A DNA stretch of 60,976 nucleotides, taken from NCBI RefSeq assembly GCF_037042905.1, contig NC_087252.1, positions 4,340,001 to 4,400,976 on the forward strand, given 5' to 3'. This document shows, one piece after another, positions 4,747-32,780 of this stretch. Source of the DNA: Lytechinus pictus. Taxonomy: Eukaryota. The translations under genes were made by a program, and so were the position numbers. Each line of letters starts with the position of its first letter. Position 1 is the stretch's first letter. The notes under the pieces were generated by a model that saw only the letters and a list, made by a program, of their open reading frames with translations, was not told where the DNA came from and did not search any database.

Positions 4747-4854
4747 ATCGAAAGCCAATTTGTACAGAAAGCCAATTTGAAATCGAACCCCAATTTGGAA
4801 ACTAAAATCAGTTTTCCGAGACGAAAGTTAATTTGAAACAAGAGCCAATTTGAA

Positions 4855-7800
4855 TTGAAAACATTTTGGAAATTTTTGGAAAGTTCTAGAACATACTGTA
4901 CTGTGTTATTACTTGCTTGTATTTCTGGTTTAAAGAAGGCAGAGATAATTGACTTGTTAGCTAGTCACATGAAGCTTACAGAGGAGTCTGAAACTTCTGT
5001 TATTGTTTCAGATGATGCTCAGATTCAACTTGCAAAATATAAAATGGAAATGAAAATGAGAGAAAACCTTAAAATGGAGAAAATGAGATTGGAGTACCAG
5101 TTGAAGTTGAAAGAAATGGAGTTAGCTCATGCAAATACTAACTCTGTAAAAGATAAATCTCCCCAAGGTTTTGATGTGGCGAAAAACATTCGCCTTGTGC
5201 CAAAATTTGATGAAGAGGGAGTTGATACATATTTTGTGTCATTTGAAAAAGTGGCCAAGAGACTGAATTGGCCCGAGGAATACCGGACTCTTCTCCTCCA
5301 AAGTGTTTTTGTTGGAAAGGCTGCAAAAGTATATTCTTCGCTCTCTGAAATGCAATCATGTGACTATGCTACAGTGAAAGAAACAATTCTCAATGCATAT
5401 GAGTTTGTACCAGAAGCGTACAGAAATAAATTTAGGAACATGCAAAGACAATCAGGCCAGACTTATGTTGAATTTGCTAGGGAACAAGAAATGATGTTCG
5501 ATAAGTGGTATAGATCACTGAAAGTTGACAAAGATTTTGTTCACCTTAGGGAAGTTGTCCTCCTAGAAGAATTCAAAAAGAGTGTTCCTTTTGGCATTAA
5601 ATCTCACTTAGATGACCACAGAGTTACTGAAGTCAGTAAAGCAGCCATAGTAGCTGATGAATTTGAGGTCACACATAAAGGTAGTAGAGATAGGCCTCCT
5701 TTGACGAATTATTGGAAAAAGAAAGGTAAAGGGTCATTTGAATCCCACAATAAACCTAGTGAGGGAAAATATGCTAGCACGGACAAAGACACTAACAAGA
5801 ATCAGGCTAGTGGGGGCACAGAATCAACCAAAAGGTTTGAGAGTCGTAGTTCCAAAATTTGTACTCATTGTCATAAATCGGGACATTTGAAAGAATCATG
5901 TTGGAAATTGGTTGGAATGCCAACCAAAGTTAAGAAAGACATGGGTTTTGTCAAGCAAACAAGTGTTCCCTCGATGGAGTTTGTCCCATCTGAGCCCAAT
6001 CGAGATGTTGAGAGTGTTTCTCTGGTATTTGCTGATAAAGTCAAGCAGGTTGATGAAACCTTTAGAAGCTTTTTGTATGATGGTGAGGTATCCCCTTGTT
6101 CGACTGGTGCTGCTGGTAGGTCAGTGGTGATCCTTAGGGATACAGGGGCCGCACAGTCCCTGATGGTGCCAGGGGATTCGGCTCTTCCTCCGGAGAGTTC
6201 AGAGAATGCCAAAGTCTTAATTCAAGGTATTGGCCCAAATTTTATGTCGGTTCCTTTGCATAAGGTCGACTTAAGGTGTGACGTAGTTAATGGTCCTGTG
6301 ACTGTTGGTGTCGTTCCAGAATTACCCATGGAAGGTGTTGATTTCTTGTTAGGTAACGACTTGGCTGGAGATAGAGTTGTTGCATCTCCAGTGGTTTCGG
6401 AGAAGCCCGTTGAGGTAGCTGAAACTGAATTGTTGCAGGAAGATTTTCCAGGGATTTTCCCGGATTGTGTTGTTACTAGGTCTCAGACTCGTAGAGCTGA
6501 AAAGGATGATGCGGAATCTGCTGATGTAGAGGAGAGTACTGATGTCTGGTTAGCTGAAACCTTTTTCAAGGATTTGAATGGGGATAGTGTTGAAGGCTCT
6601 GTTGCTAACAATGATAGTTTGTTTAGTAAATCCTCCCTTGTACAGGCACAACAGGCAGACCCAGAATTAAAAAGCTTGTCACAGAAAGCATGTTCTGAGG
6701 CTGAGGCTGATAAGGTTCCTGGGTGCTTTTATGTCAAAGATGACATTTTGATGAGGAAGTGGAGACCTCCCCGGAGACCAGCTGATGAAGATTGGTTTAT
6801 AATTCACCAGGTAGTAGTTCCTCCCTGTTACCGCACATATATTCTGAAAATGGCTCATGATTTACCTATGGCAGGTCATGTCGGTATTCGGAAGACAGAA
6901 GATAGAATTATGAGGCATTTCTATTGGCCTAAGATGCACAAAGATGTTGTGCATTTTTATAAGACATGTCACACATGTCAGATTATTGGCAAGGCACAGC
7001 CTTCTATCAAGCCTGCTCCATTGATACCCATTCCTGCATTTGATGAACCTTTTACTAGGGTTCTTGTTGATTGTGTTGGACCGTTACCCAGAATGAGGTC
7101 GGGTCACAGATTTCTCCTGACGATTATGGACTTGTCTACACGTTTTCCAGAGGCGATACCTTTGAGAAGTATCACTGCAAAGGCAGTGGTACAAGCGTTA
7201 CTGCAGTTTTTCACTCGGTATGGTCTGCCTAAGGAAATTCAGTCTGATCAAGGGTCAAATTTCATGTCAGGAATATTTCAGCAAGTTATGAAGGAGTTGG
7301 GAATAAAGCAGATCAAGTCCTCTGCTTGTCACCCACAGTCCCAAAGAGCGTTAGAACGCTATCATCAGACCTTGAAGACTATGATTAGGGCTTATTGTGA
7401 AGACTATCCCGATGACTGGGATAAAGGGATCTCATTCCTACTGTTTGCAACTAGGGATTCCCCTAATGAGTCCACGGGTTTCAGTCCATTTGAATTGGTC
7501 TATGGTCATGAGGTTAGGGGTCCCTAAAGCTTATCAAAGAGAGGTTTATGGTTCAGGATGATGATGTAAACCTTCTAGACTATGTGTCAAAGTTTAGAGA
7601 AATGCTCTCAAAAGCTTGTGATGTGGCTAAGGAACACTTGAAAGTGTCGCAGGGAAAAATGAAAGCTCACGCTGACAAAAATGCAAAAGAGCGAAGTTTT
7701 AAGCCTGGAGACAAAGTGTTAGTGTTGTTGCCTTTGCAATGTGAGCCCTTGAAAGCTAGGTTTAGTGGTCCCTACATAGTCAAAAAGAAATTGAATGATG

Positions 7801-9606
7801 TCAACTATGTCATCAGTACCCCTGATCGAAGAAAGTCTCAAAGAGTTTGTCATGTAAACATGTTGAAAGAATATTTTGAGCGAGAGGCTAGTCAGCCAAT
7901 AGGTATGACACAGGTTAAAGAAGACAAGAAACATGTAGATGTACATGAAGAAGAATGCTATGGAAAGACAGATAATGAATTGTCTTATACAGATGTATCT
8001 AAGAATGAACCATGTGGTGTAAAGTTGTCTAACTCAGAGATGTTAGGAAATATGGATGAGGCATTAAAACACCTGCCTGAAGATCAGAGAAATGATATAT
8101 CTGGCCTGTTAAGAGAATATGAAAATGTGTGTAAAGACAAACCAGGTCGTACACCTTTAACTGTACATGATGTAGACGTAGGTGATGTAAGACCTATCAA
8201 ACAGAATCCTTAGAGGCTCAATCCAAGCAAGTTGGAAATGGTGAATAAGGAAATACAGTTTATGTTAGATAATGACATAATCGAACCGAATCAGAGTAGT
8301 TGGAGTTCTCCTATTGTAATGGTTCCAAAGCCAGACGGCTCTCAGAGATTTTGCATTGATTACCGAAAGGTAAATGCAGTAACTAAGACTGACTCGTATC
8401 CAATTCCTAGGTTAGAAGATTGTATTGATAGGGTTGGAAATTCTGCCTATATCACAAAGATAGACTTGCTTAAAGGATATTGGCAAGTGCCACTGACTGA
8501 CCGGGCCAAAGAGATATCAGCCTTTGTTACACCTGAAGGCTTATTTCAATGCAAAGTCATGCCTTTTGGAATGAAAAATGCACCAGCAACCTTCCAAAGG
8601 TTAACAAATCAAGTAATTGCCGGACTTGACAATTGTGTCGTATATATAGACGACATCCTAGTGTACAGTGATACATGGAATGATCATCTGGATCATTTGA
8701 GAGCACTGTTTGACAGGCTGGATAAAGCCAATCTAGTAGTGAATCTGATGAAGAGTGAATTTTCCAAGGCAAAGGTCACATATCTTGGTCATGTGGTTGG
8801 TCAAGGGCAAGTGCTACCAAGAGAAGCCAAGATACAAGCTATCTTAGACTTCCCAATTCCCACAACTAAGAAAGAATTGCTCAGAGTCTTAGGTATGAGT
8901 GGCTTCTACAGGAAATTTGTTCCAAATTACAATACAGTGGTTAGCCCTCTGACAAACCTGCTGTAGGCAAAAGTGAAGTATGTTTGGTCTGACAAATGTC
9001 AGAGATCATTTGAGAAATTAAAGGCCATTTTGGTGAATGGGCCAGTTTTGGCTGCTCCAAACTTCACAAAGCCATTCAAAGTAGCAATTGATGCATCTGA
9101 TGTTGGAGTAGGAGCAGTATTGCTCCAAGAAGATGAAGAAGGCATCGAAAAACCAGTGTGCTACTTCTCTAAGAAACTCAATCGGTTTCAGAAGAAGTAC
9201 TCAACTATTGAAAAAGAGGCCCTGAGTCTCGTACTAGCCCTTCAGCAGTTTGAGGTATATCTAACCAATGGAGAGATTACAGTCTATACAGACCACAATC
9301 CTCTTGTGTTTTTGGAGAAATTCAAAACAAAGAATCAAAGACTGTATATATGGAGCCTAATACCTTGGTCACATTTGCTCTACGGCGGCCGTACGGCGAG
9401 TCGAAAACAGCCGTTTTAACATTTTCTTGTACCAACTACATACAGGTGGTTTAAATTAAAATTAATAAAACGGCTGTTTTCGACTCGCCGTACGGCCGCC
9501 GTAGAGCAAATGTGACCAAGGTATTATGCTCCAACCATTCCCTTTGAAAATTATACACATAAAGGGAAAGAATAATGTAATTGCTGATGCTCTTTCAAGA
9601 GTATAA
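4855..9606 (+). pseudogene. Gypsy B gag-pol polyprotein (capsid/SCAN-like, CCHC knuckle, protease, integrase, RT, RNase H), disrupted
   Basis: CTHCHKSGHLKESC; ILRDTGA; integrase H..H..CHTC zinc finger plus VDCVGP/SDQGSNF/ERYHQ core and GPY; RT YIDD; RNase H DASDVGVG; ends ADALSRV* at 9606. Lesions: frameshift near 7525, stops at 8211-8213 and 8964-8966, MITE at 9361-9523. Confidence 0.93.
9361..9523. mobile_element. PIF/Harbinger-like MITE with ~58-bp perfect TIRs
   Basis: TACCTTGGTCACATTTGCTCTACGGCGGCCGTACGGCGAGTCGAAAACAGCCGTTTTA and its reverse complement, with TAA/TTA 3-bp flanks. Removing it restores the RNase H frame WSLMLQPFPLKIIHIKG. Confidence 0.85.
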
Positions 9607-9817
9607 AAAGTGAAAATATTCATGCTTTTGACCAAGTGTGTCATTTGAAGAAAGAGTATTTGATGTTCATTTATTTAAACATGTTTGTGTAGTACACATT
9701 TGTACACGATAACTGTAAACAATTTATCAAGATGACTTAGAAAAGTAAAAGGAAAAAAAAGGTAATCTTAAAGAAACCTTAACTACGATAAAGCTTTCTT
9801 TTCCCCAGTGGGGGAGG

Positions 9818-10748
9818 TGTTACATATAGGAAGAATTGTAAGAGTATATTACATTCATTTATTTAGTTATTTCCTCTTTAAGAATATTTTGGAATGATTA
9901 AGAATGTTCCCGAAGGCTCTATAGTATAGCTGTGTTACACATGAGTAATCTTTGAATACTCTTTGTAATTTTTGAATAGAGACTGCCAAACAATAGGCTT
10001 AGCTATTTTGTTGACACTGTTGAGTTCAATGAGACTGCTCCTAAAAGGAGAATGCTTTTTATAGAAAATACTAGAACCTTCTATAATAGACAATAATAGA
10101 AGCCTCTAGAATAGTGAATGTTCTAGAAAAGATGAAATGGGTATATAAAAGCGGCAGTTTCTTCACGAACATCATCACATCATATGAGATCACTTGATCA
10201 TATCAGATCACTTCATCATATCAGATCAGAACGCAAAGTTTCATGCCAGACTTTATGTCAGAGCAGAGTTTATTTCCATCTGGAATATTGATCTTCTGTG
10301 GAATTATTTACCCGCCATCAATGAACTGTTTGCTGTTATTTTGAGAGAGGAATTCTCAGTTCTCATCGAGATCATCAACATCATCAACCTGTTCAATGAA
10401 CGCTTTTCAACCCATGGATTGCTGAATTTGACTGTTAATCATCATCAACATCGTCTTCACGGACATTTTAACTCGTTACAGTGACTCTTGTTATTCATCG
10501 TGCTTCAACATCAGTTTCATCGTCGCCATCTTTGTAAACAGAGTTTTCGCCAGCCCAACTGGGATACTATCATTTGGATCATAAATTTGGAATAACACCA
10601 GAACTGATTTCAAGAGACGTAAGATTATGATTATTACGTTATGATTTGTTTGTATATATGGTAAATTAATTTCCTGTAATAAAAAAAAAGGAAATTCAAC
10701 TTCAACACTCAATAATATTTCATTGTTATTTGTTGCAGTATCGTAACA
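9818..10748 (+). repeat. 3' LTR of Gypsy B
   Basis: TGTTACA...TCGTAACA, immediately after the polypurine tract. Confidence 0.95.
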
Positions 10749-11999
10749 ATAGTCATTTAGTTGTCTCGTATTATATGAATGTAAAGTATTGTTTCTCATA
10801 AATTTAGTTTGTAGGACATTAGGTACACTATTTCTATCTAGCTGATACATGAATTGGAATAGTTGCAAGCGGTACAGGTCATTGACTTTAAGGATACGTT
10901 TCTGACGAAACAATTAATTCATCCGTATGAGCTCTAAAGGACATATTGCATATTATTCTCAGTACTTTTTTTCTGAAGTAGCAAGACTTTATTGAGTCTC
11001 GTTTGAGAGGCATTACCCCATGCCAGAATTCCATAATTAAGATATGGTAGAATTAATGCACAGTACAACATGGATAGCGCCTGTGCTGGAAGAACGTTTT
11101 TAAGCTTATTGATGACTCCAATATTTCTTGCCACAGTTTTGCAAATATTGTTGATATGAGCATTCCACGTAAGCTTGTTATCAATAGTAAGACCTAAGAA
11201 TGTTGTTGTTTGCACTTCTTTGATTTCAGTATTATCTAAAAGTATTTGATGCGATAGATGTTTCAATGAATGACTAAGAAGCATATAATTAGTTTTTTGC
11301 AGATTCAATGACAGTTTGTTTGCTTTTATAATCCAGTTTGTTACTTTTTTAAATTCTGCATTCATAGTGCTCACAAGTACATGTGGATCATGATGTGTAT
11401 AGAAAATATTGGAATCATCAGCAAAGAGAACAAATGAGAGAACATGAGATGAATTTTTCATATCATTAACATAAAATACAAATAGCAAAGGGCCAAGAAT
11501 ACTACCTTGTGGAATTCCACAGGAAACTGGCCTTGTTGAAGATTCTGATTCATTTACTGTGACAAACTGAATTCTATCAGTAAGATAACTCTTAAACCAT
11601 TGTAAAGCTGTCCCTCTGATACCGTAATTTGATAGCTTACATAATAGTATTTCATGATCTATTGTATCAAACGCTTTTGAGAAGTCGAGGAATAACCCTA
11701 CGGTATGATCAGAATCGTCAAAAGAAGTAGATATTTTATTTATTAATGTAAATATAGCATGAGTTGTATTATGTTTTTCTCTAAAACCGAATTGATTATC
11801 ACATATAATACTCTATTTCTTAAGGAAAGCAACTGTCCTTTTATAGATTATCCTTTCAAGAATTTTTGAAAAGGAAGTTAACAAAGATATTGGGCGGTAA
11901 TTACTAGTAATTAATTGGTCTCCCTTCTTGAAAATGGGTATAACTTTAGCTATTTTCATCTTCTTAGGGACCTGGCCAAGCTGCAATGATAAATTAAAT

Positions 12000-13458: not shown

Positions 13459-14739
13459 TTAAGTATCATTTGGAATTGATATACAAGAAACATACAGATT
13501 ATTTTTCCGATTGATATACCTTAATATCGATTTTGAAACCCATGGGAGCTTTGGAACACGTTTATAATCGTAATTTCGATATATCTTTAAAGGAACACAT
13601 GAATCTAAGCAGTCATTGAGAGATTTCAAAAATATGTCAAATGAGTCATCGACATTCTCTTTCGAGTTATAAACGTCAGACCAATCAACAGAGCTTAAAT
13701 CTTCTTGGAGACGTTCAATAGTTTTATCACTAAAGTTGCGACAGATTCTATATTTCTTATCCATTTTTGCGAATGATTGCATTGTTTGGATATGGGTAAA
13801 AATAATAAAATGATCAGATATGTCTGTCGTAACAATACCAGCTTTCGGAAGAGGATGAGAGTTACAGAATATATTATCTATAAGCGTAGCAGAATGATCA
13901 GTAATACGGGTTGGTCTAGAAATAATAGGCAAAAAAGTAGAAGTTAACATTAATTCAAGGAAATCATTTGTTAAAGAGTGATTACTAGTCAAGAGATTAA
14001 TATTGAAATCACCAGTGATGATACAATTGTTATTAATTAATTCTCCGTTTTGCAAAAGTTCATTAGTAGCAAGTAAAAAATCTTCTATACAAGAAGTTTG
14101 AGGAGGTCTGTAAATGACACCTATTAGAATTTTCTTAGCTTTTTGAATTTTTACTTCTACAAATAAGGATTCAATGATATCATTCATATATTCAAATTCA
14201 TGTCTAATTGCATAATCAAATGAAGACGGAATATATAATGCTATTCCACCTCCAATTTTATTTTTCCTATTGTTTATAACAATATCATAATTCGGGAGGG
14301 TGCATAAGGAATTCGGTGTTTCCGTGAACCAAGTTTCAGTAAGAGCAATGATTGGGGGATTGGCAAACTGTGTATTTTCTAATAATAATCGTAATTTCTC
14401 AAAGTTTTGGTTAGCGCTTCTTATATTCAAATGCAAAATAAAAACATCATCTTCTCCAATCAATTTAGCATAGTCTTTGAATGAATTTTCTGTATAATAT
14501 GGAGACGAGGAAAGATTGTATGCTTTATCATGAATATCGAATTCAACTTGAAGTTCATCAAAATTATTAGTAAGAATGTCAGTAGAAAATCTATCAAATG
14601 GAGTATGATGATTTGAGATAATATTGCTTTTATCTTGATGATTTAGTAATAAGAAATCATCATTATTCAGATGATAAAAGGGGAAATCACGCATATTATC
14701 CACCATTATGAAATAGAATATATTGCCATTTAAAAACAA
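13459..14739 (-). pseudogene. LINE ORF2 N-terminus, apurinic-like (APE) endonuclease
   Basis: LHLNIRS, IIALTETW, GVIYRPP, ITGDFNINL, LIDNIF and SDHF motifs. Confidence 0.9.
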
Positions 14740-15087
14740 AATCTTTGTAAGCTAGGCATATGAAGCATCTTTTAGATTTGATACCATCATGACCCAAAAT
14801 TCGAGTTTGGAAAATACTGCAGTTGTAATATTTAACAAAATAAAGATTATTTAATACAATTATTAACGATCGATGAAGAATATTTGCACACAAAAATAAG
14901 GAAAATGACCTCCATAAAATGTCTGGTAATGAAACATTATTTAAAGGGCAGTGAAAGAATGCAATATATACCACGGAAAATAACACAGATATTGATCGAT
15001 GCGAAAAATTTTGTGACAAGAATTTCATAATAAATGAAAAGAATACTGGAAAATCAAATAAAATGGAATGGATGAAGGATAGGCCTA

Positions 15088-15533
15088 CTACAGCTTGGAA
15101 AAGTCCTCTCTAGAATGAATGATGATGGGTTGACACTTCTCATCCTTCCTTACAAAAATTCGGCCATTCTGGGTCCACAGGAACTTGTATCCGGCATCTC
15201 GGCGGGCCTTGTTGAGATCGTTCATTAGCTCCTTAGTGGAAGCGATCAGGTTTTCATTGAGGTAGATCTTGCCATCGCCGTTGTATCCAAGATCCTTTGT
15301 GCTGAGGGTCTTCAGCTTCCTTCTCCCATCATACATGATGTTCCGAGCACGTCTTGTGGTGAATCGCACGATGATCGGACGGGCTTTGTTGTCAGCTTGG
15401 CGCTTGGAAGCTGCAAGCTCAGGGCTGATGTGTTTTGCGATATTTAACACGATCTTTTCAGGAACCTCTCCCGGTCGTTCTGGTACACCTGCCACTTCCA
15501 AGTTGACTCTCCTGTGGTACTGGTCAAGATCGT
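15088..15533 (-). pseudogene. LINE ORF1 C-terminal part (RRM/CTD type)
   Basis: LDQYHRRVNLEVAGVPE, RPIIVRF, IYLNENL, YKFLWTQNGRIFVRK; lies upstream of the APE ORF on the same strand. Confidence 0.8.
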
Positions 15534-16986
15534 TAATGCTTTGTCTATCTGCTTCCTGGCAGCATAGGAAACAGGGGCTGCTTTATAGAACTTGGGTCAT
15601 TGTTCTCTTCTTGAGGATACACTTTGGCCTGGCATCCTATCAGTTTTCCAACTGAACTATCATCAAACAACTCTGCATGCTTTTTTAATCCATCTTGCAT
15701 AACATCTTGCAAATTATGCATACTGCTGGGGCTTGCTTCTTGTGCAATATGGTTGGCTAACTGTGCTAACAGTTGTGGATACTTCTGTAACCAATCTCTT
15801 CCAATTAGGCTGGCACCTCTTTGGACAACAACTAGCTTCAGTTTGTCCGGCTTCATCTGTGTTTCAAGCTGAACATCAACTGTGGCTTCACCAGAAATAT
15901 CTAATTTTCCTTCTGTATAGGACTTGAGTCTAATGTTACAAGAAGTTAGCTTGGAATCCTTGCTGATTCTACTGTACACTGCCTTTGAAACAATAGACCA
16001 TGGACTTCCAGTATCAATTTCGAGCTCGACTTCTGCGCCATTCACTATCACAGTAGTCATGTATGGATCAGAATTTGATAATTTGTAAATCGATTCGTCT
16101 TCCAAATGATCCGTTTTTCCGTCTTCGGAGTTTGATGCAGACTCTTCATCATCTAGTGATGTGCTTTCTTTGAAGATTGTGTTTTCTTTTGATAGAATTT
16201 CTGCTGGTAGGCTTTTACTAGTTCACACTGGCTCTTCGTGTGACCAGTTTTGGAACATTTGTAGCATTGTTCGTCGCGAAATTTACAAGTCGCTGGCTCA
16301 TGGCTGCTACCACCACATCTCCAACATCTCTTTGGGCTTGGAGTAGAACGCTTGTCCTTGGACTTTACCGTCTTTGCTGGAGTCCTATTCTGCGGTTCAG
16401 CGGTCACCTTCCTTTGAAGTTTATGAACCGATGTAGGATCATCATGTGGCTTTTGTATCTGCTTGATCTGTTCCACATCTTGCTTAGCTACTTCCATTGC
16501 TGTCGCAATGTTGACTGCTTTTTCAAAAGTCAACTGGGGCATTCCCAATAGCTTTCGTTGTATGTTGACATCTGAACATCCTACTACTAGTCTGTCTCTC
16601 AGCATATTATCAAGTTCTTTGAAGTTGCAACCATCGCTAAGCTGTCTGAGCTTTGCTAAGAACTGAGGGATTGTTTCATTTGTTTGCTGAGTGCATGTGT
16701 AACACCTGTATCTTTGTACGATTTCTGTAGGCTTTGGCGAATATTGTGTAGTCAGTGCATCTTTACATTGCTTGTATGTTTTAGCTAATGGCTTATCTGG
16801 CTGTAACAGTGCTCGAAGGGTGTGATAACCTTTGCTACCTAATCCTGTTAAGAACAATGCTTTTTGCTTTTCATCTAATTTTATGTCATTAGAAGCGAAC
16901 CATGCTTCTAAGACTTCGGTCCATTCTTCAAATGTATAACCAGAATCTAACTGGGGGGCATTCCCAATAACTTGATTAGCCATCAT
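15534..16986 (-). pseudogene. Gypsy A gag and aspartic protease
   Basis: Gag with LRDRLVVG and two CCHC knuckles (CWRCGGSSHEPATC, CYKCSKTGHTKSQC); protease EIDTGS...LIGRDWL. Frameshifts near 16155 and 15597 break what looks like a single gag-pol ORF. Confidence 0.9.
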
Positions 16987-21269: not shown

Positions 21270-23442
21270 GGGCGATTCCTCACTAGAACTTCAAAAATAT
21301 CATAAATTTCAACATGCTTTCAATAAGTCATAAGTAGTGTAATATTGTATTATGATACCTAAATTTTAGGAAAATAATGAGTTTTAACCAAAAGTGAAGT
21401 CAGATATAGTTTTTTTTTTTGGGGGGGGGGACAATGGAATTCTCAATTTTCAAGAATTTTGCTAATTAAATAGTCAAGTACAAACACTGCCTGAAACCAT
21501 TATTGGCAAAGCACGAGAAGATTGAAAATATTGCAGGACAATGGATAATGTATCATTGATGGTTCCAAATAATATCTTCAACATTTTCATGGTCCATAAT
21601 AGGGGCAGCCCTGATTTTTCTAAACCTATTTTTGGCAATGCCCCGTACAACGCATTGAAATGCAAAAGTTTTCCCTACAATTTTATTTTTGATGATGCAG
21701 TCTCACAATATCAGTTTCTCTATCTTTGACCCATGGGTGATCGATTTATCCCATAAGGATCTAATTACTGCCCTTCATTTTTCAATAATTGTCCTATTAA
21801 AAGTTGTCTCGTACGACACAGTGTGTGTCGTATGGGACATGTCCCGTACGACACACAATATATACTGCATTTGATTGCAGGATTTGGAATCAGAAACTAT
21901 AAATAGTAGGCCTATTTTAATTTAAGTAATTGATTCGACATAAAGTGAACTGAAAAAGTATTTTTTTATCACCATAGAACATGAAATAGGTGATTCTAAC
22001 CATTTTAATTGACTTCATGTACATGATGTAGGCGAATTTGTGAATCCCTTCAGCTAAACTGGTGATTTTCACTGGTCAGAGTAGGTTATTTTCTTTGTTA
22101 TTGAAGATGAAAAGAAAACCTTTATAATTGCTTCACCCTAGCCTGGAAATGAATGTGAAATTATTATAAGATGTAAAAAAATATATATATTTACATATCA
22201 ATCATCTATTTGGACCTCCCTTGATGATCATTATTTTTTTACATACAGTATTGAAACTCCTTACTTTTTTCAAGTTCTAAAAAAAATCTGCAAAATAAGA
22301 CAAACCATGTTTTTCCAAAAAAAATCTGAAAAATAAGACAAACCATATGGTTTCATGAAATGCAGAAAGGTTTGAAAAAGTAGAATCGTATTTCTTTAGA
22401 AAAAAATATTTTGTGGAATTACAAGTGACAGTTGTGACATATCATGTATATATACATTTTATATGAAAAATCATAACATTTTAGCCCCATAATTTACACA
22501 AGCAGTTTCATTCATTCATTGTTTAAATAGTGTATTGGAAATCATAAATTAATTCACTAAATCTCAATTCACACAAACCTCAAGTTTTTCAGCTCGTAAA
22601 AATGCTGTGAACCATTGTACATTTCCCATCATGAAAAGAATGACAATATATTTCTCTCGATTGTATATATAATAGATAGAATGGGGCTTCTTAATTACAT
22701 AGTCCTGAATGACTACTTATTAAGGGTTTTCATTAAAAAAGAAGAATTTAGGGGCAATGCTCCCCTTCTGATTGATAAAAAGTTTATTGTTTTATTCAGG
22801 CTGTCCAGTACAACACGCAAGTGCTTGTTCAACACACAAGTGTCCCGTACGACACGTTATTTTGTTTATGATATATTGACAGAAATATTCAGCCAGTAGC
22901 GGTTTCTAACATAATGAATGTCTTTAGTTTGATAGGGTAATCATTATCATCAGCCAATTTAAGTGATTGAAGAAATCAAAGAGACACAAAGTAGGAAAGT
23001 TTGGCTTCAATTTAGAGATGTCCCGTACGACACATTTTGAGTGTCCCGTACGCCACAATGTTCTCGAAAATTGTAATTTATTTTGCTTTATTTATTCATG
23101 AATGTTTATTTTGCTTTCTTTCATAGATGTGTTTGTTCTTGGGTAATTGAATATCAATTTGAGTTCAGTTTCTATGAAAATTATCTGTCCAACTCACATA
23201 CTTTAGAGTACAAACTTGAGGTTTCTAAATAACCACTTTTTATGCGTCCCGTACGACACATTACTATTTTAAATCTGTATTATACAGGATGTGAATTCAA
23301 GTCATGTTAAGTCTTAGTTTTCCTAACACCTTGGCAGTACTTGATGATCACCTTTAGTTACTGGAATATATTTTTGTTTTTCTTGTCAAAAAAACTGTCA
23401 AATGTTCTCTAAATGTCCCGTACGACACGTATGGAATCACCC
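21270..23442. mobile_element. Non-autonomous DNA transposon, Sola2-like (GGG termini, 4-bp TSD)
   Basis: TAGT|GGGCGATTCC...GGAATCACCC|TAGT, with about nine copies of TGTCCCGTACGACAC. Confidence 0.6.
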
Positions 23443-23619
23443 TAGTGATATCTGCCAAGTATAAGGACAATTGGATGTACAATATATTGATTGATGATAA
23501 TCTATTATGTTTTACACAGTTAAAAAATAGCACGTTGTTTAAGCCTGTCACTAAAAACAATTACAAAACAGTTTAAACAACCTGTTGTTAGAGTGACAGC
23601 GTTTTTACAGTGTATGTGT

Positions 23620-24194
23620 ATGTTGTTAATTATTATATTTATGCTATCAATTATACTGAGGTCAAGCGAACTTCAAGAAGAAATGAGAATGGTCTTGTGA
23701 TAGATAAGACTCAAAGTTCTAGAAGATTGGAAATTGAAACAAAAGGCTGAGAGATCTTTTAGGGATATCAGAACCTGAAAATTTCAGCGCACATAATCAT
23801 GATAATTGCAGATCGATAGACTTTACCTTCTTAAGGAATTCAACATTAATGTATGTAGAATTGTTCTCATCGCATTAACAAACTGTTTGCAACCATTTTA
23901 GTTCTAAACAAGAGCATCAACCTGTTATGGAGAAGATTCTTTAATCAATGAATTGCTGAAATCAACTGTTTATCATATAATCATCATCAACTTTAATTTG
24001 CCTTCATGGACATTTCAGCTCACTACAGTGACTGTGATCTCCCATGGTATTTCAAAATGACTTCCCATCGTGGCCCTCATTTTGGACCCTTCATTCTTCA
24101 ACTTACCCGCTGATTCATTTGTTTTAATAATAAAAGAGAATCATAAAATTTTATCATATCATCTCTGTTATTATGGTGCTTCTGTATCGTAATA
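23620..24194 (+). mobile_element. Diverged solo LTR related to the Gypsy B LTR (left boundary approximate)
   Basis: Colinear similarity to the Gypsy B LTR (CATCAACCTGTT, ATTGCTGAA, AATCATCATCAAC, GGACATTT..ACAGTGACT) and an ending GTATCGTAATA versus GTATCGTAACA. Confidence 0.6.
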
Positions 24195-25463
24195 CATAGG
24201 AGTATCGACGGTTTGCTGATCGCGCATATTAAAAGTGAGGTCATGTCAGTTGTTGTACACACTATGTCATAATCTAAACTACTGAAATAGCAAGCATGTA
24301 GCCCCTTTTTTTCTAATTCTCACCTTGGTTTTGTGCAATAATAAAGATATAAATGTTAGGCGATTGTTTCGGTCTTCCTTACCAACTACCGTCAATCCTT
24401 ATGGCATTGAAATTATTTGTAAGGCTTGGGACATAAAGTGGCAATTATACTGTACTTTGCAGTTGGTTTCGCGCTGTCGTATATAGACCAATTCTGTTCG
24501 GATGCTGTTTATTATGGTAATTTATAACTGTGGGGAGGGGGGGGTGGGCTTCAAGTTTGACAAAAAATTGATGATTTATGCACTGACATAACAACGCGGC
24601 TGGCCCGATGTATAATCCATTAAAGATGCTTTTTTCTCAGCTTATGGCGGCCATATATTAGAGAGCTCCAAGTCGATTTGTCATGATTACAGCTTATGTC
24701 GAAGTGTTGCGGTGAGATGCGTTGTGGTTTTACGCTAACCACACCCTTCGAGAAAGCCCCCCCCCCCCTCCCTTTGTCTCAAATGGTTGTGTTAAGAACC
24801 AATTGGTGCGTTAACGCAACATTCGAGATAAACGACGAGGATGGGGCTTGACTCGAAAGGTTGCAATAATGTAATTAAATACTGAACATGACATTCAGCT
24901 TGACTGTCTTATGAATATCAATATAACTGAAATGTATTTGTAAAAACTTTGCACAATTGACAGGGGCCACGGAACCGAAGGTGCTCCAGCCCCCCCCCCC
25001 CCCCCCACACGCACTTATTCCAAGGCCGTGTAGAAAAACTCAAAACTACCATCTGAAAGTATTTTTTGTACAGTTTCATAAAAGTTCTCTGACCCCTGCT
25101 ACATTACACATTTTTATACATTTAAGTTAACTATTTGATATTGTTTGTTATTAGACTAGTTTACATGAAAACAAATCCAAGCGGGAGGCTTTTCTCAAAG
25201 GGTTGGGTTAAAGCACTGCACCGCAATTAAATACTTCGAGATAAGCCCATGGTTAAATGGATCGTCAAATGAATTTCCCTTGTTTTAATTAAGTAAGTTA
25301 CAAGCTTTATTCCAGTGTGGTCTACAGTTACAGTGAATACATTTCAGAAGTGCATTTTTTATATATACAGTATAACTCTACTTTTGAAGGGAAAAAAAGA
25401 AGACCACAACTGGTAGCCTGATATTTAGAATGACCTTAACTAATTCTACTTTCAGAAAGCAGC

Positions 25464-28400
25464 ATGCCATTTGCAGCACCAGACACAGTCTCAGAGCTGA
25501 ACGAGCAGAAAGATGGTTTTAATGCTGAGTTATACGCAAGCATGGACGTACTTCATAAACGGGAAATCCGAAATCACCTGAGAGATATTGTCGAACTGAG
25601 ACATAAAGGTACGTACAGTACTGATGAAACGATGATCAGCAAGCTTGATCAGTTGAGGCAATTGATGAATGTACCTAAGGAAAAATGGATCGAACATTAT
25701 GATGATGAAATTATTGATGACATGATTACCAATATGCTATCCGACATAAAGCACCTTGAACAATTAGTTGAAGGTAAACCAAAAAATAGTGCAGCAGAAA
25801 TTCTGGAAAATGCTTCAGGAGGGTTAGCTTTGAGGGGTATTCTAGTGGGGGAAGCATATCATGATGATTGCATGAAATGTGTTGTGCTTAGCACACCAAC
25901 GGATATTAAACTAATGAATCCTACAATGAAACAAATTGACGGTGCAGTGCACTTCTCCTCCAAAGCACAGTCCGATCATTTCCACCAATCTCTAGATACA
26001 ATGGGATACAGTGTTGCCTGTCTTGTGAAAGACGGGGGCTGGGGCTTTAAAGCGGAGGCCAGTTTTTCCAAGATGTTCGAGAAGGCAGATGAAAAAGAAT
26101 CAGAATCTTACGAACGTACCCATTTTGAATCAAGTGTAAAATATTCTGTTATTCCAACTGCTGCTTGTGAGCTGAATCCACACAGCTTAAAACTATCCTC
26201 ACAAGCTTTGGACGAGCTCAAAACCATTGACAAACTTTTGGTAGGAGACAAAAACCCAGACCTTGTGTACGAAAAATGTGAGGGATTTCTTAAAGCATAT
26301 GGGTCACACATCAATGCTGGGATACTTCATTTCGGTGGGGTTTACCACATTGCAGCTACATGCACAAGCGAGTCTAAATCCGAAGAAGTTAAGAATATGG
26401 TTCGAGGTGCACTAAGTGCATATGCTTCAGCCAGCTATTTTGGATTCGGAGCCAGTATGGATGCCAATAACATAAAACCGACTGACAATTTAACAGATAT
26501 CCATGATGAATCAGACCAGGCCGAAACCACCTTGCACACTACCAGAATAGGTGGGCCACAGGAAGTAAGTGCCTTTCCACTGTGGAAAATTGGTCTTGTG
26601 ACATGCAGTAACACCTGGGCTCTTATAGATAGAGGAAAGTCGCTTTTCACCGATCTAGTTGGAATCTGGAAGCTGATTCCTAACCATAAAGATGACTTCC
26701 TAGAACCAGATGAACTTGAGTCTTCATTGATGACAGTATGGATGAGCAGTTTTCTTGGATCCAGTGACCAAGGACGAACTTTCGTAGAAAGTTTTGATGA
26801 AATAGATCTACTGGTTGACAGGATTGGCAAATGGAATTCTAATCCAATACGACCAGAAAAGTGCATTGAATACCTCCAAGACGTGCTGAAAACGGTGGAA
26901 CAGGTTGAGGCTCAGACTAACACGACTAAGTACTGGGATGACAAGTTATGCACTGGCGTAAACATAAGCAACTTCTTTAGGAAGATCATGGAACTGACCA
27001 AAAATCTTGACTCAAAAGACGTGTTTATGGTACAGTATTTGATTGCAAAGCTTGTTAGTGTGGTTGGACCTAGAGAGTTCCCTGAAAAACATAAGATTAA
27101 TGCGTGGCTTCAGGTTATCACAAAAACCGTGAAAATCCAACCTATACTAGCTAATGTTATCGTCCAGAGCATACCTGATCTTTTACAGAATCTTAATGAA
27201 AGATTCATACCATCATTTCAATCTGAACATGCACGTAAAGAAGAGCTAAACGTGTATGTATTTGACTGTATCAATGCAGGAGCGACAGTTGAATTGTCCA
27301 TTTGTGTTGGTCAGCTTCTGAACAATTTGCAAGCATCTGGGGAAGCACATGAAATGTTCTTTTTGAAAATTGCCCTATTGTCGCTTCAATATCATTGGCC
27401 TACAAAGAGGTTTAAAACCCCTATTGTAGTGACGAAGCTTCGGGAATTTGTTCAGTCAACAGAAGTGTTGTGGAAAGAATTTCAAGTAAAGAAAGAGAAA
27501 GGGATAATCCAGCTCGAGGCGTTTCTTATCCAGACCCTTCTGACCTCTGGCCAGTTCGATGAAGGAAATAATTCATCAGAAGATGAATTGTCTGAGATAA
27601 CTAGGGATATTAGGCAGGTGTTATCACCCGAATTAAACAAAGTCATGAACGATTATGCCACTCATTCACCTTATCAATGGGTTGAGATCCTTACTACTAC
27701 TGCTGAACTAGCAAATGGGAACATGGCAAGTTCTAAGGAAAAAGAAATGGACATCGGAGATTTGAAAAGCATACTTGGCTCCCAAGACAGAAATTCACAA
27801 TTAGATAGATCACGTAAAATAACCAATTCAGATCTCCCCGCACAAGAAAATTTTTCAGATATTCTGAATACTCTTGGCTTAGACATGTACTATCCATCAA
27901 AGATTACCCTCTTGGATGTCACGGTCATTAAAAAGGCCACTGGGCCCCTCAAGCTGGTTGACCTTCCCTGGAGGATTATACACAAAATCCTGATGATTGA
28001 TTTTCATGCAAGAGACGAATTTTTGCCAATGGTGAGCAAATCACGAAAACAAGAGATATCTAATGCATCTAATGAGGGAGGTCAATTAGACTTTGAAGCA
28101 ATTCTTCGTAAAGTGAAAGACACTAGTGATGGCGGAGGTAAGATAAAACATCTTAACACTTTGGATGTACTGGTGGCAACATTTACTTGCTGCGACAACT
28201 TTCTAAAACAAACACTTGCTCAAAAGATGTTTGTTTGCAAACTTGCCATTCCTTTTCTTTACCCTCTAAGATCAGAAGGAATTATGGGGATGTCACTATG
28301 GGCACTCAGGGCGATAACTGTTCAGTGGCAAACTAACGAAAATGTAGTTTCCGAAGCGTCAGTGACAGAAAAACCTTTCCCATTGGTGACGTTTGTCAGA

Positions 28401-31400
28401 TTGGGCAGGCCACCGCTTTCTAAGTCCAAGCTAGTTAATGATATCATTAGGGATGAAAGCCATGACACCTTTTTCCATCATGATTGCAACAGTGGTACCA
28501 TACCGAGAAGGATTACTGATGGTCTTGTGGAATGTTCCTGGTTCATATCAGGGGGAAAGGAGAAAGAACACCTACCAGCCACAACAATGCTCCTAAATCT
28601 GAGAGGCGATGGCTCGTTAATGATAAAACAGATGCAAATCTTGCAGGAAATATCATCTGTAATGTTGGTCATGGCCACTGCTAAGGACCTAGCAAGAGCC
28701 CCAAACACTAACACATGTCAACAGATTTTGAAATCTAGATGTAATGTCATCCTCTTCGTGATTAGTGAGTATAACAAACAAGGTAAACAGGAACTAAGTA
28801 AGGAACTGCGAGCAGGTTTCAAGGCAGTTGGCCATGGTCTTTTGAAAGGAGTTCCAATTATTCTATCGAGCACATTCCAAGGTAGTAAGAAAAATGCCAG
28901 TGAGCTCAAGACTGAAATTCGAGTAGAGCTCTCAGAGCTCATTGCTGGTTGTTCTGCTATATCCATAGAAAAGTATGCTCGACGTGCGAAGGAATTTGGG
29001 GTCATGATAGATGAGTACGATGGTGAAGCCTGCTTGAAAGGTAAGCGCTTTGCAGAAAATGTTGTCAAACACTTGAAAGGTATAGACATCGCTGACTGTA
29101 AACGCCTCCTTCTTCCCCTGCAGGGTGCTGAATGGATTGATTACTGCAAGCTGGTAAAGATGCATCACAGAACAAGTGGCAAGGGTTCGCAGTCGTCATC
29201 AGAATACCATGCTGATAGGATGAAACAGAAGATCGACCTTCTTCGTGAAAAACAAGTGGAAATATGCCACAACAGACTCAGTCCTTTCATTACAGACTTT
29301 ATGTCAACTCTGAATGAGGACCGTGAGATTGTAATGTATTTCCTAAAATGGATGACCATCCTATTCGACGAGAAATCGAGGACCTACTTGCCAGGTTTGC
29401 GCAGGAGATATCACGAGGTATGGTTAGAGTTCCAGGTGGCAAAGAAAATACAGAGGAATGGAGACTTGCAGGACTTGAAACAAAAAGTGGATTTAGTAGA
29501 AAATCAGCTGGCCCGTGCATCACTTGGAGTGGAAAATCTTTTCAGAGAACTAGGACAGATTTACGAGGCAATGAAAAGCAGCAAAATAGGAAAAAATACT
29601 AAGGCAGTCGTAGAGAATCTGCCAGAAATAGCAGCAAATTTGCTATTAATTGGCATCCCCTTGGAGTTGGTAGATGGAGACGCATCAAGTGTACCTATTG
29701 AATGGGTGAGCGCAGTGCTATGCAAGCTTGAAAACATTATCGGCGAAAAGAAACTTTTTGTCATCGCTGTCTTAGGCATCCAGAGCTCTGGAAAATCTAC
29801 ACTTCTAAACACCATGTTTGGGTTGCAGTTTGCTGTCAGTGCAGGCAGATGCACAAGGGGAGCATACATGCAGCTCATACCAGTAGAAGAAGACGCATAT
29901 CTGCCATTCAGTTATGTTGTTGTGATTGATACAGAGGGCCTCCGGTCACCAGAGCTAGAACAACTTAATTACGACCACGATAATGAGCTGGCAACCCTCG
30001 TAATTGGACTGGGAGATGTAACCATGATCAACATAAAAGGAGAAAACACGACCGAAATTAAAGACATTCTACAGATTGCAGTGCATGCATCCTTAAGAAG
30101 GAATCTGGTCAGGAAACACATCCGAGACCACGCAACATGTATATTTGTTCATCAGAATGTCCCAGCAGCTAACGCAGAAGAACTGATGATGCATGGATGC
30201 CAGAGGCTACAGGAGGACTTAGATGATATCACCAAAGAGGCAGCCCTTAGTGAGAGCATAGCAAACGTTAACAGTTTCTCACAGATTATCAGCTTTGATG
30301 TCCAAAACCACGTTTGGTACTTTTCTGATCTCTGGCATGGCGATCCACCCATGGCCCCTGCAAACCCTGGCTACAGTGAAAAGGTAGATGCAGTCAGGTT
30401 TAACCTTTTGGGAGAGATTGCAGAGGGGCAGAAAACATTTCTGACAACTTCAGATCTGGCAATTCGCCTTAATGATCTATGGAATGGGGTCCTTGCTGAT
30501 GACTTTGTATTTAGCTTCCGTAACAGTCTTGAGGTGAAAGTCTACAATGGTTTGCAATCGAAGTACTACACTTTGGAATGGGATATGCAAAATAAGATGA
30601 AATATTGGTTGCTGACCGCAGAGACCAAGTTGAAGATGTGTGTAACTGTGAATGACCTAGAAAGTTCCTTTGTGTCTCTTAAAGGAGAACTCTTACGAGT
30701 TCTGAGTGAAAAAGCCATGGAAATTGAATTTCGTCTGAGAGATTACTTCGAAGAGAGTAACCTACAAGGAATAGTAATCCAGTGGCAGCATTCCAAGTTC
30801 AACCAATTCGACTCAGCAGTACAACAACAACAATATGAAAGCAAAGCAGATCTGCTCTCAATAAAAGAAGCACGCCGAGTGGAAATCTTGCAGACTCAAA
30901 AGTGGTCAGAGCATGAGGCATACATCATGGACAAAGCAGTTGAATTGGCAGACAAACTGAAAGGCAACGAAGCGAGTAATAATGAACTGGAAAAGAGGTT
31001 TGATATCATGTGGAGATTAATGGTGCGCGAACTGGCAGCAGAGACTGAAGACACGAAGCTGCAAATGGATATAGTGATGGAAGAAATTCTTCGCATAAGA
31101 TTTTTTTCACATAGAGCCGTTCTTAAACTTGAGCTAAAGCAATCTCCTCTGAGTTCTTCACTAGAGCAGATGTCCTTGGAAAACAGTATCACTTATGGTG
31201 ATATTTCAAACGAACACATCTGTTTGAAAGCCACTCGATGGGAAAATGGCAAGAACCTTGTTGGTTTCGGCGATAATTTACGGGCCGCCAAGCAAATGAC
31301 AGTTGTGCTGACAAACAGAATCTTCAAAGAAATCGACACTTATTTAAAAGGTCTGTCTAATCAGGACGTAAAATTCCAAAAGGGTCATGCGACAGAGGTC

Positions 31401-32780
31401 ATACAAAAGCTTGTAACGGAAATAGACGCTTACAATCAAGAAGCACTTATGTCTAAAAATTACAATTTCACGATTCTCCCCGACTATGTGGTAAAATTAG
31501 CAGTTCATGTAAGCCGTCACTGTGTCCAGGTGTTCAGCTTGATGCAATCTGAGTATAACAGCAAATATGGCGTAAAGGCAAAAATACAAGACTACAAGAA
31601 CACCGCCTTCAGTCTTTTCAAGAACCAGGTCAAACAGAGCACTGAAGAGGTCGTGGCAGGTGACCTCTTGTGCACACATTTGATGAAGGTTGTAGAGGAG
31701 GCGGTAAAGAAGGCAATTCCGAGACAATGCGTAGATGAAGTTCTCAGAGACTTCCAGATGAGCAAGTACCACCTGATGGTGAAAATTATGGAAGACCTGG
31801 CTGTGAAAGCAAACTTCAAGGAATACGAATCCTTCATCAATAATGCCGAAGCATTTGCTTTTAGATGGATTACCGAGTACACAAATGAGAAGATGTTTAC
31901 GAGAAAAGATGGAGATGACATGTCTCGGTACGCACAGTTAGCTGCGTGTCATATAAAAAATATCATAAAATGTATTACCAAAAGTGTCAAGTATGCAACT
32001 GCTGAGGTCGAAGGGGGCAAAGGCATGAGGATGCCAATGTGGATTGAAAAGTTCTGCCACAAACTCTCGGCGAGAATAGCGGTACCAGTCAGCACTCTTA
32101 ACTGTGTGAGTGCTCGACCAATAGTTGATTTCAAGAATATGCAAAGGGTCATTCTTGATAAGTTAGATGAACAGGAAAATAATCTGATGTGCAGCTTTGC
32201 CAATGAAACAGCAAACACTATTGCTTGGGACGGGAAACCCCCACCACAGCAAATTCTAGACAAGATTTGGGGTTGTACTGAGAAGTGCCCATTCTGTGGG
32301 GAGCCATGTGCAGACACCACACCTGACCATTATTCATTATATAAGAGAAGTCACACGTGTGTGCAACACAGACCAAAAGGAATAAAGGGAATTTTCTGGC
32401 GTAGTGACTCTATTCGTGATGGCATCATAGTCTACAAGAAACAGCTAAATCACGAAAGCTGCAACTATTCCGTACAGCAAAAGGAACTTGAATTCTCGTG
32501 CCATGCCTGTAATTTCAAGTGCCGAAAATATGGAAAATGTACAACTACTGGCACAAACTGGGTGTCCCACAATAATACAGAGTACAAGACTTATCTTCAG
32601 GACTGGGACATAGCTCCTGATCCTACCAACAGCGTATCAAAATATTGGATGTGGTTTATGGCGACCTACCAACACCAGCTAAGGGATATGTACAACGTTC
32701 GATTACCGTCCATACCCGTTTCGTGGAGGACAATTACAAAACAAGAAGCCTTAACAGACCTGCGCAAAATCCACCACTAG
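25464..32780 (+). CDS. GVIN1: Interferon-induced very large GTPase 1-like protein (VLIG/GVIN1 family), 2438 aa, single long coding exon, with an N-terminal MACPF-like region
   Basis: Uninterrupted ORF. G1 GIQSSGKS (29775-29798), G2 RCTRG, G3 DTEG (29928-29939), FVHQNV, LWHGDPPMAP, FVFSFRN, and C-terminal CPFC...HRP...YWMWF, as in VLIG/URGCP proteins. A splice acceptor TTTCAG at 25450-25455 precedes the ATG, so an upstream exon is likely. Confidence 0.92.
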   Translation: MPFAAPDTVSELNEQKDGFNAELYASMDVLHKREIRNHLRDIVELRHKGTYSTDETMISKLDQLRQLMNVPKEKWIEHYDDEIIDDMITNMLSDIKHLEQLVEGKPKNSAAEILENASGGLALRGILVGEAYHDDCMKCVVLSTPTDIKLMNPTMKQIDGAVHFSSKAQSDHFHQSLDTMGYSVACLVKDGGWGFKAEASFSKMFEKADEKESESYERTHFESSVKYSVIPTAACELNPHSLKLSSQALDELKTIDKLLVGDKNPDLVYEKCEGFLKAYGSHINAGILHFGGVYHIAATCTSESKSEEVKNMVRGALSAYASASYFGFGASMDANNIKPTDNLTDIHDESDQAETTLHTTRIGGPQEVSAFPLWKIGLVTCSNTWALIDRGKSLFTDLVGIWKLIPNHKDDFLEPDELESSLMTVWMSSFLGSSDQGRTFVESFDEIDLLVDRIGKWNSNPIRPEKCIEYLQDVLKTVEQVEAQTNTTKYWDDKLCTGVNISNFFRKIMELTKNLDSKDVFMVQYLIAKLVSVVGPREFPEKHKINAWLQVITKTVKIQPILANVIVQSIPDLLQNLNERFIPSFQSEHARKEELNVYVFDCINAGATVELSICVGQLLNNLQASGEAHEMFFLKIALLSLQYHWPTKRFKTPIVVTKLREFVQSTEVLWKEFQVKKEKGIIQLEAFLIQTLLTSGQFDEGNNSSEDELSEITRDIRQVLSPELNKVMNDYATHSPYQWVEILTTTAELANGNMASSKEKEMDIGDLKSILGSQDRNSQLDRSRKITNSDLPAQENFSDILNTLGLDMYYPSKITLLDVTVIKKATGPLKLVDLPWRIIHKILMIDFHARDEFLPMVSKSRKQEISNASNEGGQLDFEAILRKVKDTSDGGGKIKHLNTLDVLVATFTCCDNFLKQTLAQKMFVCKLAIPFLYPLRSEGIMGMSLWALRAITVQWQTNENVVSEASVTEKPFPLVTFVRLGRPPLSKSKLVNDIIRDESHDTFFHHDCNSGTIPRRITDGLVECSWFISGGKEKEHLPATTMLLNLRGDGSLMIKQMQILQEISSVMLVMATAKDLARAPNTNTCQQILKSRCNVILFVISEYNKQGKQELSKELRAGFKAVGHGLLKGVPIILSSTFQGSKKNASELKTEIRVELSELIAGCSAISIEKYARRAKEFGVMIDEYDGEACLKGKRFAENVVKHLKGIDIADCKRLLLPLQGAEWIDYCKLVKMHHRTSGKGSQSSSEYHADRMKQKIDLLREKQVEICHNRLSPFITDFMSTLNEDREIVMYFLKWMTILFDEKSRTYLPGLRRRYHEVWLEFQVAKKIQRNGDLQDLKQKVDLVENQLARASLGVENLFRELGQIYEAMKSSKIGKNTKAVVENLPEIAANLLLIGIPLELVDGDASSVPIEWVSAVLCKLENIIGEKKLFVIAVLGIQSSGKSTLLNTMFGLQFAVSAGRCTRGAYMQLIPVEEDAYLPFSYVVVIDTEGLRSPELEQLNYDHDNELATLVIGLGDVTMINIKGENTTEIKDILQIAVHASLRRNLVRKHIRDHATCIFVHQNVPAANAEELMMHGCQRLQEDLDDITKEAALSESIANVNSFSQIISFDVQNHVWYFSDLWHGDPPMAPANPGYSEKVDAVRFNLLGEIAEGQKTFLTTSDLAIRLNDLWNGVLADDFVFSFRNSLEVKVYNGLQSKYYTLEWDMQNKMKYWLLTAETKLKMCVTVNDLESSFVSLKGELLRVLSEKAMEIEFRLRDYFEESNLQGIVIQWQHSKFNQFDSAVQQQQYESKADLLSIKEARRVEILQTQKWSEHEAYIMDKAVELADKLKGNEASNNELEKRFDIMWRLMVRELAAETEDTKLQMDIVMEEILRIRFFSHRAVLKLELKQSPLSSSLEQMSLENSITYGDISNEHICLKATRWENGKNLVGFGDNLRAAKQMTVVLTNRIFKEIDTYLKGLSNQDVKFQKGHATEVIQKLVTEIDAYNQEALMSKNYNFTILPDYVVKLAVHVSRHCVQVFSLMQSEYNSKYGVKAKIQDYKNTAFSLFKNQVKQSTEEVVAGDLLCTHLMKVVEEAVKKAIPRQCVDEVLRDFQMSKYHLMVKIMEDLAVKANFKEYESFINNAEAFAFRWITEYTNEKMFTRKDGDDMSRYAQLAACHIKNIIKCITKSVKYATAEVEGGKGMRMPMWIEKFCHKLSARIAVPVSTLNCVSARPIVDFKNMQRVILDKLDEQENNLMCSFANETANTIAWDGKPPPQQILDKIWGCTEKCPFCGEPCADTTPDHYSLYKRSHTCVQHRPKGIKGIFWRSDSIRDGIIVYKKQLNHESCNYSVQQKELEFSCHACNFKCRKYGKCTTTGTNWVSHNNTEYKTYLQDWDIAPDPTNSVSKYWMWFMATYQHQLRDMYNVRLPSIPVSWRTITKQEALTDLRKIHH

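Follow-up and report, generated by a model that had tools for sequence, protein, structure and literature searches.

Can a giant GTPase carry a pore-forming domain of the perforin type at its N-terminus, and if so, what would this domain do there? The question is raised by a locus of the sea urchin Lytechinus pictus, which was analysed within a stretch of 60,976 nt of genomic DNA (assembly GCF_037042905.1, contig NC_087252.1, positions 4,340,001 to 4,400,976), referred to below as the window. Coordinates are positions in this window, and all features of the gene under study are on the forward (+) strand. The locus carries an open reading frame (ORF, 25464..32780) which codes in a single exon (7.3 kb) for a protein of 2438 aa. 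An initial annotation, made from the sequence alone, had noticed motifs in the order expected for a MACPF (membrane attack complex/perforin) domain and had proposed that such a module is coupled to a very large GTPase. Family profiles and a predicted structure identify the region aa ~110-430 (25791..26753) as a MACPF domain, genuine but divergent. It is ancestral to the giant GVIN/VLIG GTPases and shared throughout this family, in echinoderms, nemerteans, birds, mouse and human.

By its sequence features, the product of the ORF is a GVIN1/VLIG-family GTPase. The closest named proteins, with 81% identity in L. pictus and ~60% identity in L. variegatus over the region of interest, are called 'interferon-induced very large GTPase 1-like'. 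A URGCP-like domain (aa 898-1200, 28155..29063; Pfam PF25496, E 4.5e-68, 230 bits) is followed by a VLIG/URGCP-type GTPase domain (aa 1239-1638, 29178..30377; Pfam PF25683, URGCP_GTPase, E 2.9e-124, 415 bits). The latter contains an intact P-loop, GIQSSGKST (aa 1438-1446), and the motif DTEG (aa 1489-1492), and the P-loop region also has weak Pfam matches to Dynamin_N and RHD3. Both domains, the length of ~2400 aa and the one large exon are features of giant GVIN/VLIG GTPases. Sea urchins are not known to have an interferon system.

The gene is intact and transcribed. A 3′ splice site (ctaattctactttcag|AA, 25440..25463) ends 8 nt before the ATG and opens the large coding exon, without any in-frame stop codon between the acceptor and the ATG. 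An RNA-like contig of 3484 nt from the public run X1, the type of which is unrecorded, covers positions 25454-28500 with zero mismatches and contains ~393 nt of further upstream sequence which were not located within 22600-25453. Because this contig matches the exon and extends upstream off the adjacent 2.9 kb, we conclude that the gene is transcribed and spliced.

The MACPF assignment is carried by the family as a whole. An exhaustive phmmer search with aa 1-470 resulted in 417 cluster representatives at E<=0.001, and among the 150 matches listed there are many with a length of ~2400 aa. From the phmmer matches, 119 N-terminal domains were aligned, which outside the urchins are 23-40% identical to the window protein. 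Nearly half of these domains (52 of 119) individually match the Pfam MACPF family at E<=0.01, the best one with E 6.4e-13. Two paralogues that are ~60% identical over the domain, P0007 and P0009, reach 32.2 and 28.2 bits, respectively, against PF01823, for which the curated cut-off is 21.5 bits. When the profile of the 119 homologues was compared to all PDB sequences, matches were obtained to C8 alpha (E 3.6e-6), pleurotolysin B (E 4.7e-4), C8 beta (E 7.7e-4) and Photorhabdus Plu-MACPF (E 0.012); a profile from only 14 sequences returned nothing but noise. In a language-model feature search, performed with the window sequence alone, the nearest ESM Atlas clusters are MACPF proteins (score 0.97).

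All seven strings on which the initial annotation had built its case occur in the translation of the ORF where it had placed them. These are GYSVACLVKDGGWGFKAEASF (aa 181-201, 26004-26066), LKLSSQALDELKTI (aa 242-255), FLKAYGSHINAGILHFGG (aa 275-292), of which the YGSH begins at 26298, ALSAYASASYFGFGASM (aa 316-332), TRIGG (aa 360-364), WALIDR (aa 385-390) and LVGIWKLI (aa 398-405). The third string includes a variant of the MACPF signature, YGSHINAGILHFGG (aa 279-292, 26298..26339), while the second conserved glycine pair is found in RIGG (aa 361-364, 26544..26555) after core strand beta4. The canonical signature, as given in the initial annotation, is (Y/W)-G-(T/S)-H-(F/Y)-x6-G-G. In the window protein it reads YGSH-I-NAGILHF-GG (YGSH-x8-GG), so that Y, G, S, H and the GG are kept while Ile occupies the F/Y position and the spacer has 7 rather than 6 residues. 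Both mismatches had been conceded from the start, and rightly so. The longer spacer corresponds to a gap in the profile alignment, where the family sequence FGSHvnqGplhFGG is paired with YGTHYIT-SGSMGG from C8 alpha and the only gap is a single residue in C8 alpha.

These deviations are characteristic of the family. In an alignment of 14 sequences (urchins, two birds and the nemertean Lineus), the columns G-S-H, G, H-F-G-G, the second G-G, W-K and D-R-G are invariant. All of these columns are still at least 90% conserved in the alignment of 119 sequences, throughout which the variant (F/Y)GSH..xG..HFGG is nearly invariant. Compared to pleurotolysin B, C8, C9 and perforin-1, the GVIN signature has x7 instead of x6 before the GG, its F/Y position is taken by an aliphatic residue or by Ala, and its consensus is HFGG. 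The domain thus represents a divergent MACPF subfamily with a signature that is longer by one residue. The likeness of the motifs goes beyond chance because they are conserved in 119 diverged homologues and because profile and fold searches yield only MACPF proteins, and in this respect the order of motifs had been read correctly.

The predicted fold points in the same direction. An AlphaFold2 (AF2) model from the 14-sequence alignment was poor, with a predicted local distance difference test (pLDDT) of 56.9, but the listed top 50 Foldseek matches were nonetheless all MACPF proteins. The model from the 119-sequence alignment reached a pLDDT of 84.7 and a predicted template modelling score (pTM) of 0.84. 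In protein numbering, it consists of strand beta1 (aa 158-164), a helical cluster (165-219, 55 aa), the long strand beta2 (220-236), a helix-turn-helix (246-279), the GSH motif with the long strand beta3 (287-302), a second helical cluster (303-353, 51 aa) and strand beta4 (354-362), which is followed by the second GG. The helix-turn-helix before the signature motif (26199..26300) corresponds to helices 152-167 and 171-185 in the numbering of the model and coincides with conserved L..LS..AL..L and C..F columns. The modelled topology is that of a MACPF domain, a bent four-stranded antiparallel sheet with the two transmembrane hairpin regions (TMH1 and TMH2) at their canonical positions. In a Foldseek search of this model against the PDB, the top 50 matches are again all MACPF proteins, led by pleurotolysin B (E 8.7e-12).

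The central claim of the initial annotation, a MACPF module at the N-terminus of a VLIG GTPase, is therefore borne out by family profiles, by a high-confidence model and by the Pfam GTPase domains. It had been made dependent on three points, and for each of them the result is clear: the bent sheet with its two helical clusters is present in the model, the family-level MACPF matches are significant, and the GSH and GG residues are conserved.

It had also been suspected that vertebrate GVIN1 shares the module, and this suspicion proved to be well founded. The GSH..HFGG motif and the GG are kept in urchin, bird and nemertean homologues. Among the AlphaFold models of Swiss-Prot proteins, the best matches to the window model are human GVIN1 (residues 160-500) and mouse Gvin1 (164-506), which superpose with template modelling scores of 0.75-0.76 at 27-31% identity and outrank perivitellin-2, plant MACPF proteins, C8, C9 and MPEG1. 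Vertebrate GVIN1/VLIG-1 (Q7Z2Y8, Q80SU7) and the window protein have the same architecture, in which the N-terminal domain is accompanied by URGCP and GTPase domains. Vertebrate GVIN1 and some of the urchin members have, however, an N-terminal extension of ~70-150 residues which is absent from the window paralogue. As echinoderms, nemerteans and vertebrates all possess the domain, MACPF and GTPase were fused before these bilaterian lineages separated, which dates the fusion to early bilaterians.

Additional N-terminal segments were observed in several homologues. In the L. variegatus paralogue P0010, a Death domain (aa 21-90, Pfam E 1.8e-6) is located ahead of the MACPF and GTPase domains; this Death-MACPF-VLIG architecture would link the family to cytosolic death-fold signalling. 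The N-terminal extensions of the distant homologues P0107 (aa 115-141) and P0057 (aa 147-167) have weak SAM_TNK-like matches (E 5.4e-6 and 3.3e-3, respectively). In P0024, the main MACPF domain appears to be preceded by another, incomplete MACPF-like segment (aa 143-223, E 9.4e-4).

Whether such a domain could insert into a membrane depends on the two hairpin regions, also named clusters of helices (CH1 and CH2), which are both helical in the model. TMH1 (25956..26120) is located between beta1 and beta2, and TMH2 (26370..26522), which contains a segment of alternating Ser, Ala and aromatic residues (ALSAYASASYFGFG), between beta3 and beta4. The length of TMH1 is identical to the family median of 55 aa, and that of TMH2 is within the family range of 40-61 aa (median 54 aa, urchin paralogues 55-57 aa). 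The best Foldseek match, pleurotolysin B, and the best profile match, C8 alpha, likewise have TMH of ~50-55 residues between core strands. The tip of TMH1 in the window protein, MGYSVACLVK-DGG-WGFKAEASFS, resembles an almost ideal amphipathic hairpin. Column-averaged hydropathy over 108 non-urchin homologues reveals that each TMH has a central Gly-rich turn, flanked on either side by a stretch in which hydrophobicity alternates with a period of two residues.

This alternation was evaluated separately for each arm, with equally long segments from the rest of the domain as background. Arm b of TMH1 is in the top 2.6% of the background and arm a of TMH2 in the top 2.2%, with a phase that is shared by 116 of the 119 sequences. 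Two other measures were less informative: in single-sequence sliding-window hydrophobic moments the TMH only reach the 93rd-94th percentile, which is not discriminating, and period-2 power over the whole region loses definition because the register changes at the turns of the hairpins. As judged from sequence and model, the TMH features fit a helical soluble state that would be able to refold into beta-hairpins, without proving that such refolding takes place.

What this domain contributes to a giant GTPase has to be considered in the light of a recent study. Of the four families of interferon-inducible GTPases, the GVIN/VLIG proteins are the least well understood, and a first function was reported only in 2025: human GVIN1 forms a coat on Burkholderia in the cytosol and interferes with a protein of the outer membrane, additional interferon-induced co-factors being needed for the coat and the effect being abolished by loss of the O antigen (bioRxiv 10.1101/2025.03.24.645074). 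We propose that the GTPase part would self-assemble, driven by nucleotide, on the surface of a target, for example a bacterium in the cytosol or a vacuole that contains a pathogen. This assembly would concentrate the MACPF domains, which may then oligomerise. TMH1 and TMH2 would subsequently refold into amphipathic beta-hairpins, insert, and perforate or destabilise the target membrane. For GTPase-driven assembly that leads to MACPF oligomerisation and insertion, including a destabilisation that stops short of a full pore, we estimate a probability of about one half. It appears doubtful to us that GVIN/VLIG proteins go further and are cytosolic, GTP-gated MACPF proteins which form true beta-barrel pores in the membrane of the microbe or of the vacuole. 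A prediction of the MACPF homodimer, run without controls, gave a score of 0.00 and is evidence neither for nor against oligomerisation.

A number of points weigh against membrane insertion by a MACPF domain of this protein. Some concern the domain itself. For the window protein, no match to Pfam MACPF was obtained at E<=10, neither with aa 1-519 nor with aa 101-420, and phmmer found no match of its N-terminus to the sequences of solved structures in the PDB; the MACPF assignment rests on family profiles and the predicted model. The Pfam check that had been advised in the initial annotation thus had a split outcome, as it failed for the window sequence alone but succeeded at the level of the family (52 of 119 domains, P0007 and P0009). 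A six-frame Pfam MACPF search of the same genome found two other loci but not the window locus, which agrees with the divergence of this copy. The ~393 nt of upstream exon sequence, which may be 5′ UTR or a further coding exon, could, in principle, alter the N-terminus.

Other points concern the hairpins and their function. The alternation is moderate in arm a of TMH1, where the phase is shared by 102 of the 119 sequences but 17.5% of the background segments equal it, and it is weak in arm b of TMH2. In this second arm, near position 26460 (aa ~332), ~6 residues after the turn are missing compared to all other urchin paralogues, and the shortened TMH2 could weaken or retune membrane insertion in the window paralogue. 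For several MACPF proteins, e.g. astrotactin-2, no pore-forming activity is known. In the GVIN1 study, the coat depends on co-factors and lysis is not reported, and the human ORF used there has 1808 aa and may or may not include the MACPF part (bioRxiv 10.1101/2025.03.24.645074).

In the main rival explanation, the MACPF domain is genuine but forms no pores: it would help to build the coat on the target as a scaffold for oligomerisation, or as a surface-recognition module and shallow membrane anchor, and any membrane damage would be done by the co-factors. We consider this a serious possibility, with somewhat less than even odds of being correct. The complete homology evidence applies to it equally, and non-lytic MACPF proteins exist, such as the astrotactins and BRINPs. 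It is also favoured by the weak or moderate alternation in two of the hairpin arms and by the shortened TMH2 of the window copy, and by the need of the human GVIN1 coat for co-factors; that the effect of GVIN1 disappears together with the O antigen points to surface recognition (bioRxiv 10.1101/2025.03.24.645074). Against it stand the lengths of both TMH, which stay canonical throughout the 119 diverged sequences, the near invariance of the hinge glycines and of the signature motif, and a period-2 pattern, conserved in phase in parts of both hairpins, for which a purely helical segment that does not refold would have no need.

Assembly-driven insertion is proposed here for a cytosolic protein. 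In a crude hydropathy test, the window protein was found to have neither a hydrophobic N-terminus nor a segment resembling a transmembrane helix, in agreement with the earlier remark that no signal peptide is obvious at the start of the ORF, ahead of which the transcript has the ~393 nt of upstream exon. By the same test, a signal-peptide-like h-region is absent from 58 of 59 full-length homologues with a Met start. We infer a cytosolic location because secretion signals are lacking in the ORF and in the family, because a module of cytosolic signalling, the Death domain, is present in one paralogue, and because human GVIN1 acts in the cytosol.

The protein would be secreted or lumenal if upstream exons supplied a signal peptide, and its MACPF domain would then act like the extracellular or vacuolar perforins. 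The consensus splice acceptor 8 nt before the ATG, without an intervening in-frame stop, and the upstream sequence of the transcript contig would permit this. We regard it as very improbable, given that a hydrophobic N-terminus is missing in nearly all of the Met-starting homologues and that the longer paralogues are extended by helical segments or by a Death domain. Moreover, a dynamin/GBP-like GTPase makes up the remainder of the protein, and the only family member studied so far acts in the cytosol. An N-terminal exon of the paralogue type, including the Death-domain region, was not found in the window by tblastn with the N-terminal extensions of the paralogues.

A chance resemblance, i.e. 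a MACPF-like order of motifs on an unrelated fold, could appeal only to the lack of a Pfam or PDB sequence match for the window protein alone, and is effectively refuted by family-level Pfam matches down to E 6.4e-13, by profile matches to several independent MACPF structures and by the MACPF clusters returned from an independent language-model feature search.

The presence of a MACPF domain in GVIN/VLIG proteins was not previously invisible but is an unremarked database fact, as precomputed Pfam annotation already assigns PF01823 to some members of the family. In a full-text search of the literature, covering about 8.4 million papers including preprints, we found no publication that draws a link between GVIN/VLIG and MACPF; the few in which both occur have them in gene lists from transcriptomes. 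In the one functional study of GVIN1, the region is simply called 'an N-terminal domain', without mention of MACPF (bioRxiv 10.1101/2025.03.24.645074). It is unusual that a MACPF domain lacking a signal peptide is fused to a giant GTPase of the dynamin/GBP-like type.

This sets the family apart from the established pore formers. MPEG1 (perforin-2) is a type I membrane protein with a signal peptide; it functions inside phagosomes and endosomes, in their lumen, and lacks a GTPase domain. The window protein, with only ~14% identity to it, has neither signal peptide nor transmembrane helix, and its MACPF domain is followed by ~2000 aa with the URGCP/VLIG GTPase. Pleurotolysin B, C8 alpha, C8 beta, C9 and perforin-1 are secreted pore formers which have accessory domains (e.g. 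C2, TSP or LDLa) or a partner protein (OlyA). Gasdermins are cytosolic pore formers that are freed from autoinhibition. The mechanism proposed for GVIN would combine the gasdermin idea with that of the GBP1 coat, both being functional analogues only. GBP1, a dynamin-like interferon-induced GTPase, polymerises on cytosolic Gram-negative bacteria and perturbs their outer membrane (bioRxiv 10.1101/2025.03.24.645074). The effector modules are not homologous: GBP1 inserts by its farnesylated tail and gasdermins have a different fold, whereas in GVIN the putative inserter is a MACPF domain.

The conserved N-terminal MACPF domain offers a concrete and testable mechanism for how these GTPases may engage a microbial envelope, namely by insertion or perforation from the cytosolic side. 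The perforin/complement superfamily would extend to a cytosolic, GTPase-coupled setting, and the early bilaterian age of the fusion links invertebrate and mammalian cell-autonomous immunity. If GTP-gated pores were indeed formed, the family would represent an 'intracellular membrane-attack complex' of ancient bilaterian origin which has been conserved between sea urchins and mammals. The first MACPF executioner that acts from the host cytosol, and the first that is directly coupled to a dynamin-like GTPase, would then have been found.

Near the C-terminus of the window protein, a Cys/His-rich stretch (CTEKCPFCGEPC ... SCHACNFKCRKYGKC, aa 2271-2359, 32274..32540) was noticed in the translation. 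Its spacing resembles CxxCxxCxxxC ... CxxCxxxC, and it is possibly a zinc-binding module, although our local copy of Pfam had no match to it. Among the newer Pfam accessions listed for the family, PF26772 and PF26773 may correspond to this stretch. The distribution of PF26771-PF26773 among members suggests that they cover regions outside of the MACPF domain.

The GTPase gene is surrounded by retroelements. A second VLIG copy was not found within the window, and the remaining ORFs are all retrotransposon-derived. They include a long terminal repeat (LTR) element with integrase and reverse transcriptase (2059-11003), which has a SCAN-domain gag-like ORF at 4855-8966, a region with endonuclease and gag-like ORFs (13459-16986, - strand), and an ORF of 1065 aa for an endonuclease-reverse transcriptase of the long interspersed nuclear element (LINE) type (57735-60932, - strand). 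At 22797-23781, short X1 contigs accumulate to a very high depth (~90-1500); their identity is 95-99% and many of their ends are loose, a pattern typical of a repeat that is transcribed or present in high copy number and not of an exon of the GTPase gene.

At least two further MACPF-VLIG copies occur on another contig of the same genome (G000:C9:9797113-9798183, + strand, and G000:C9:9845719-9846789, - strand). They are ~48 kb apart in opposite orientation, lie within open frames of 2188 and 2429 aa, and form a small local gene cluster.

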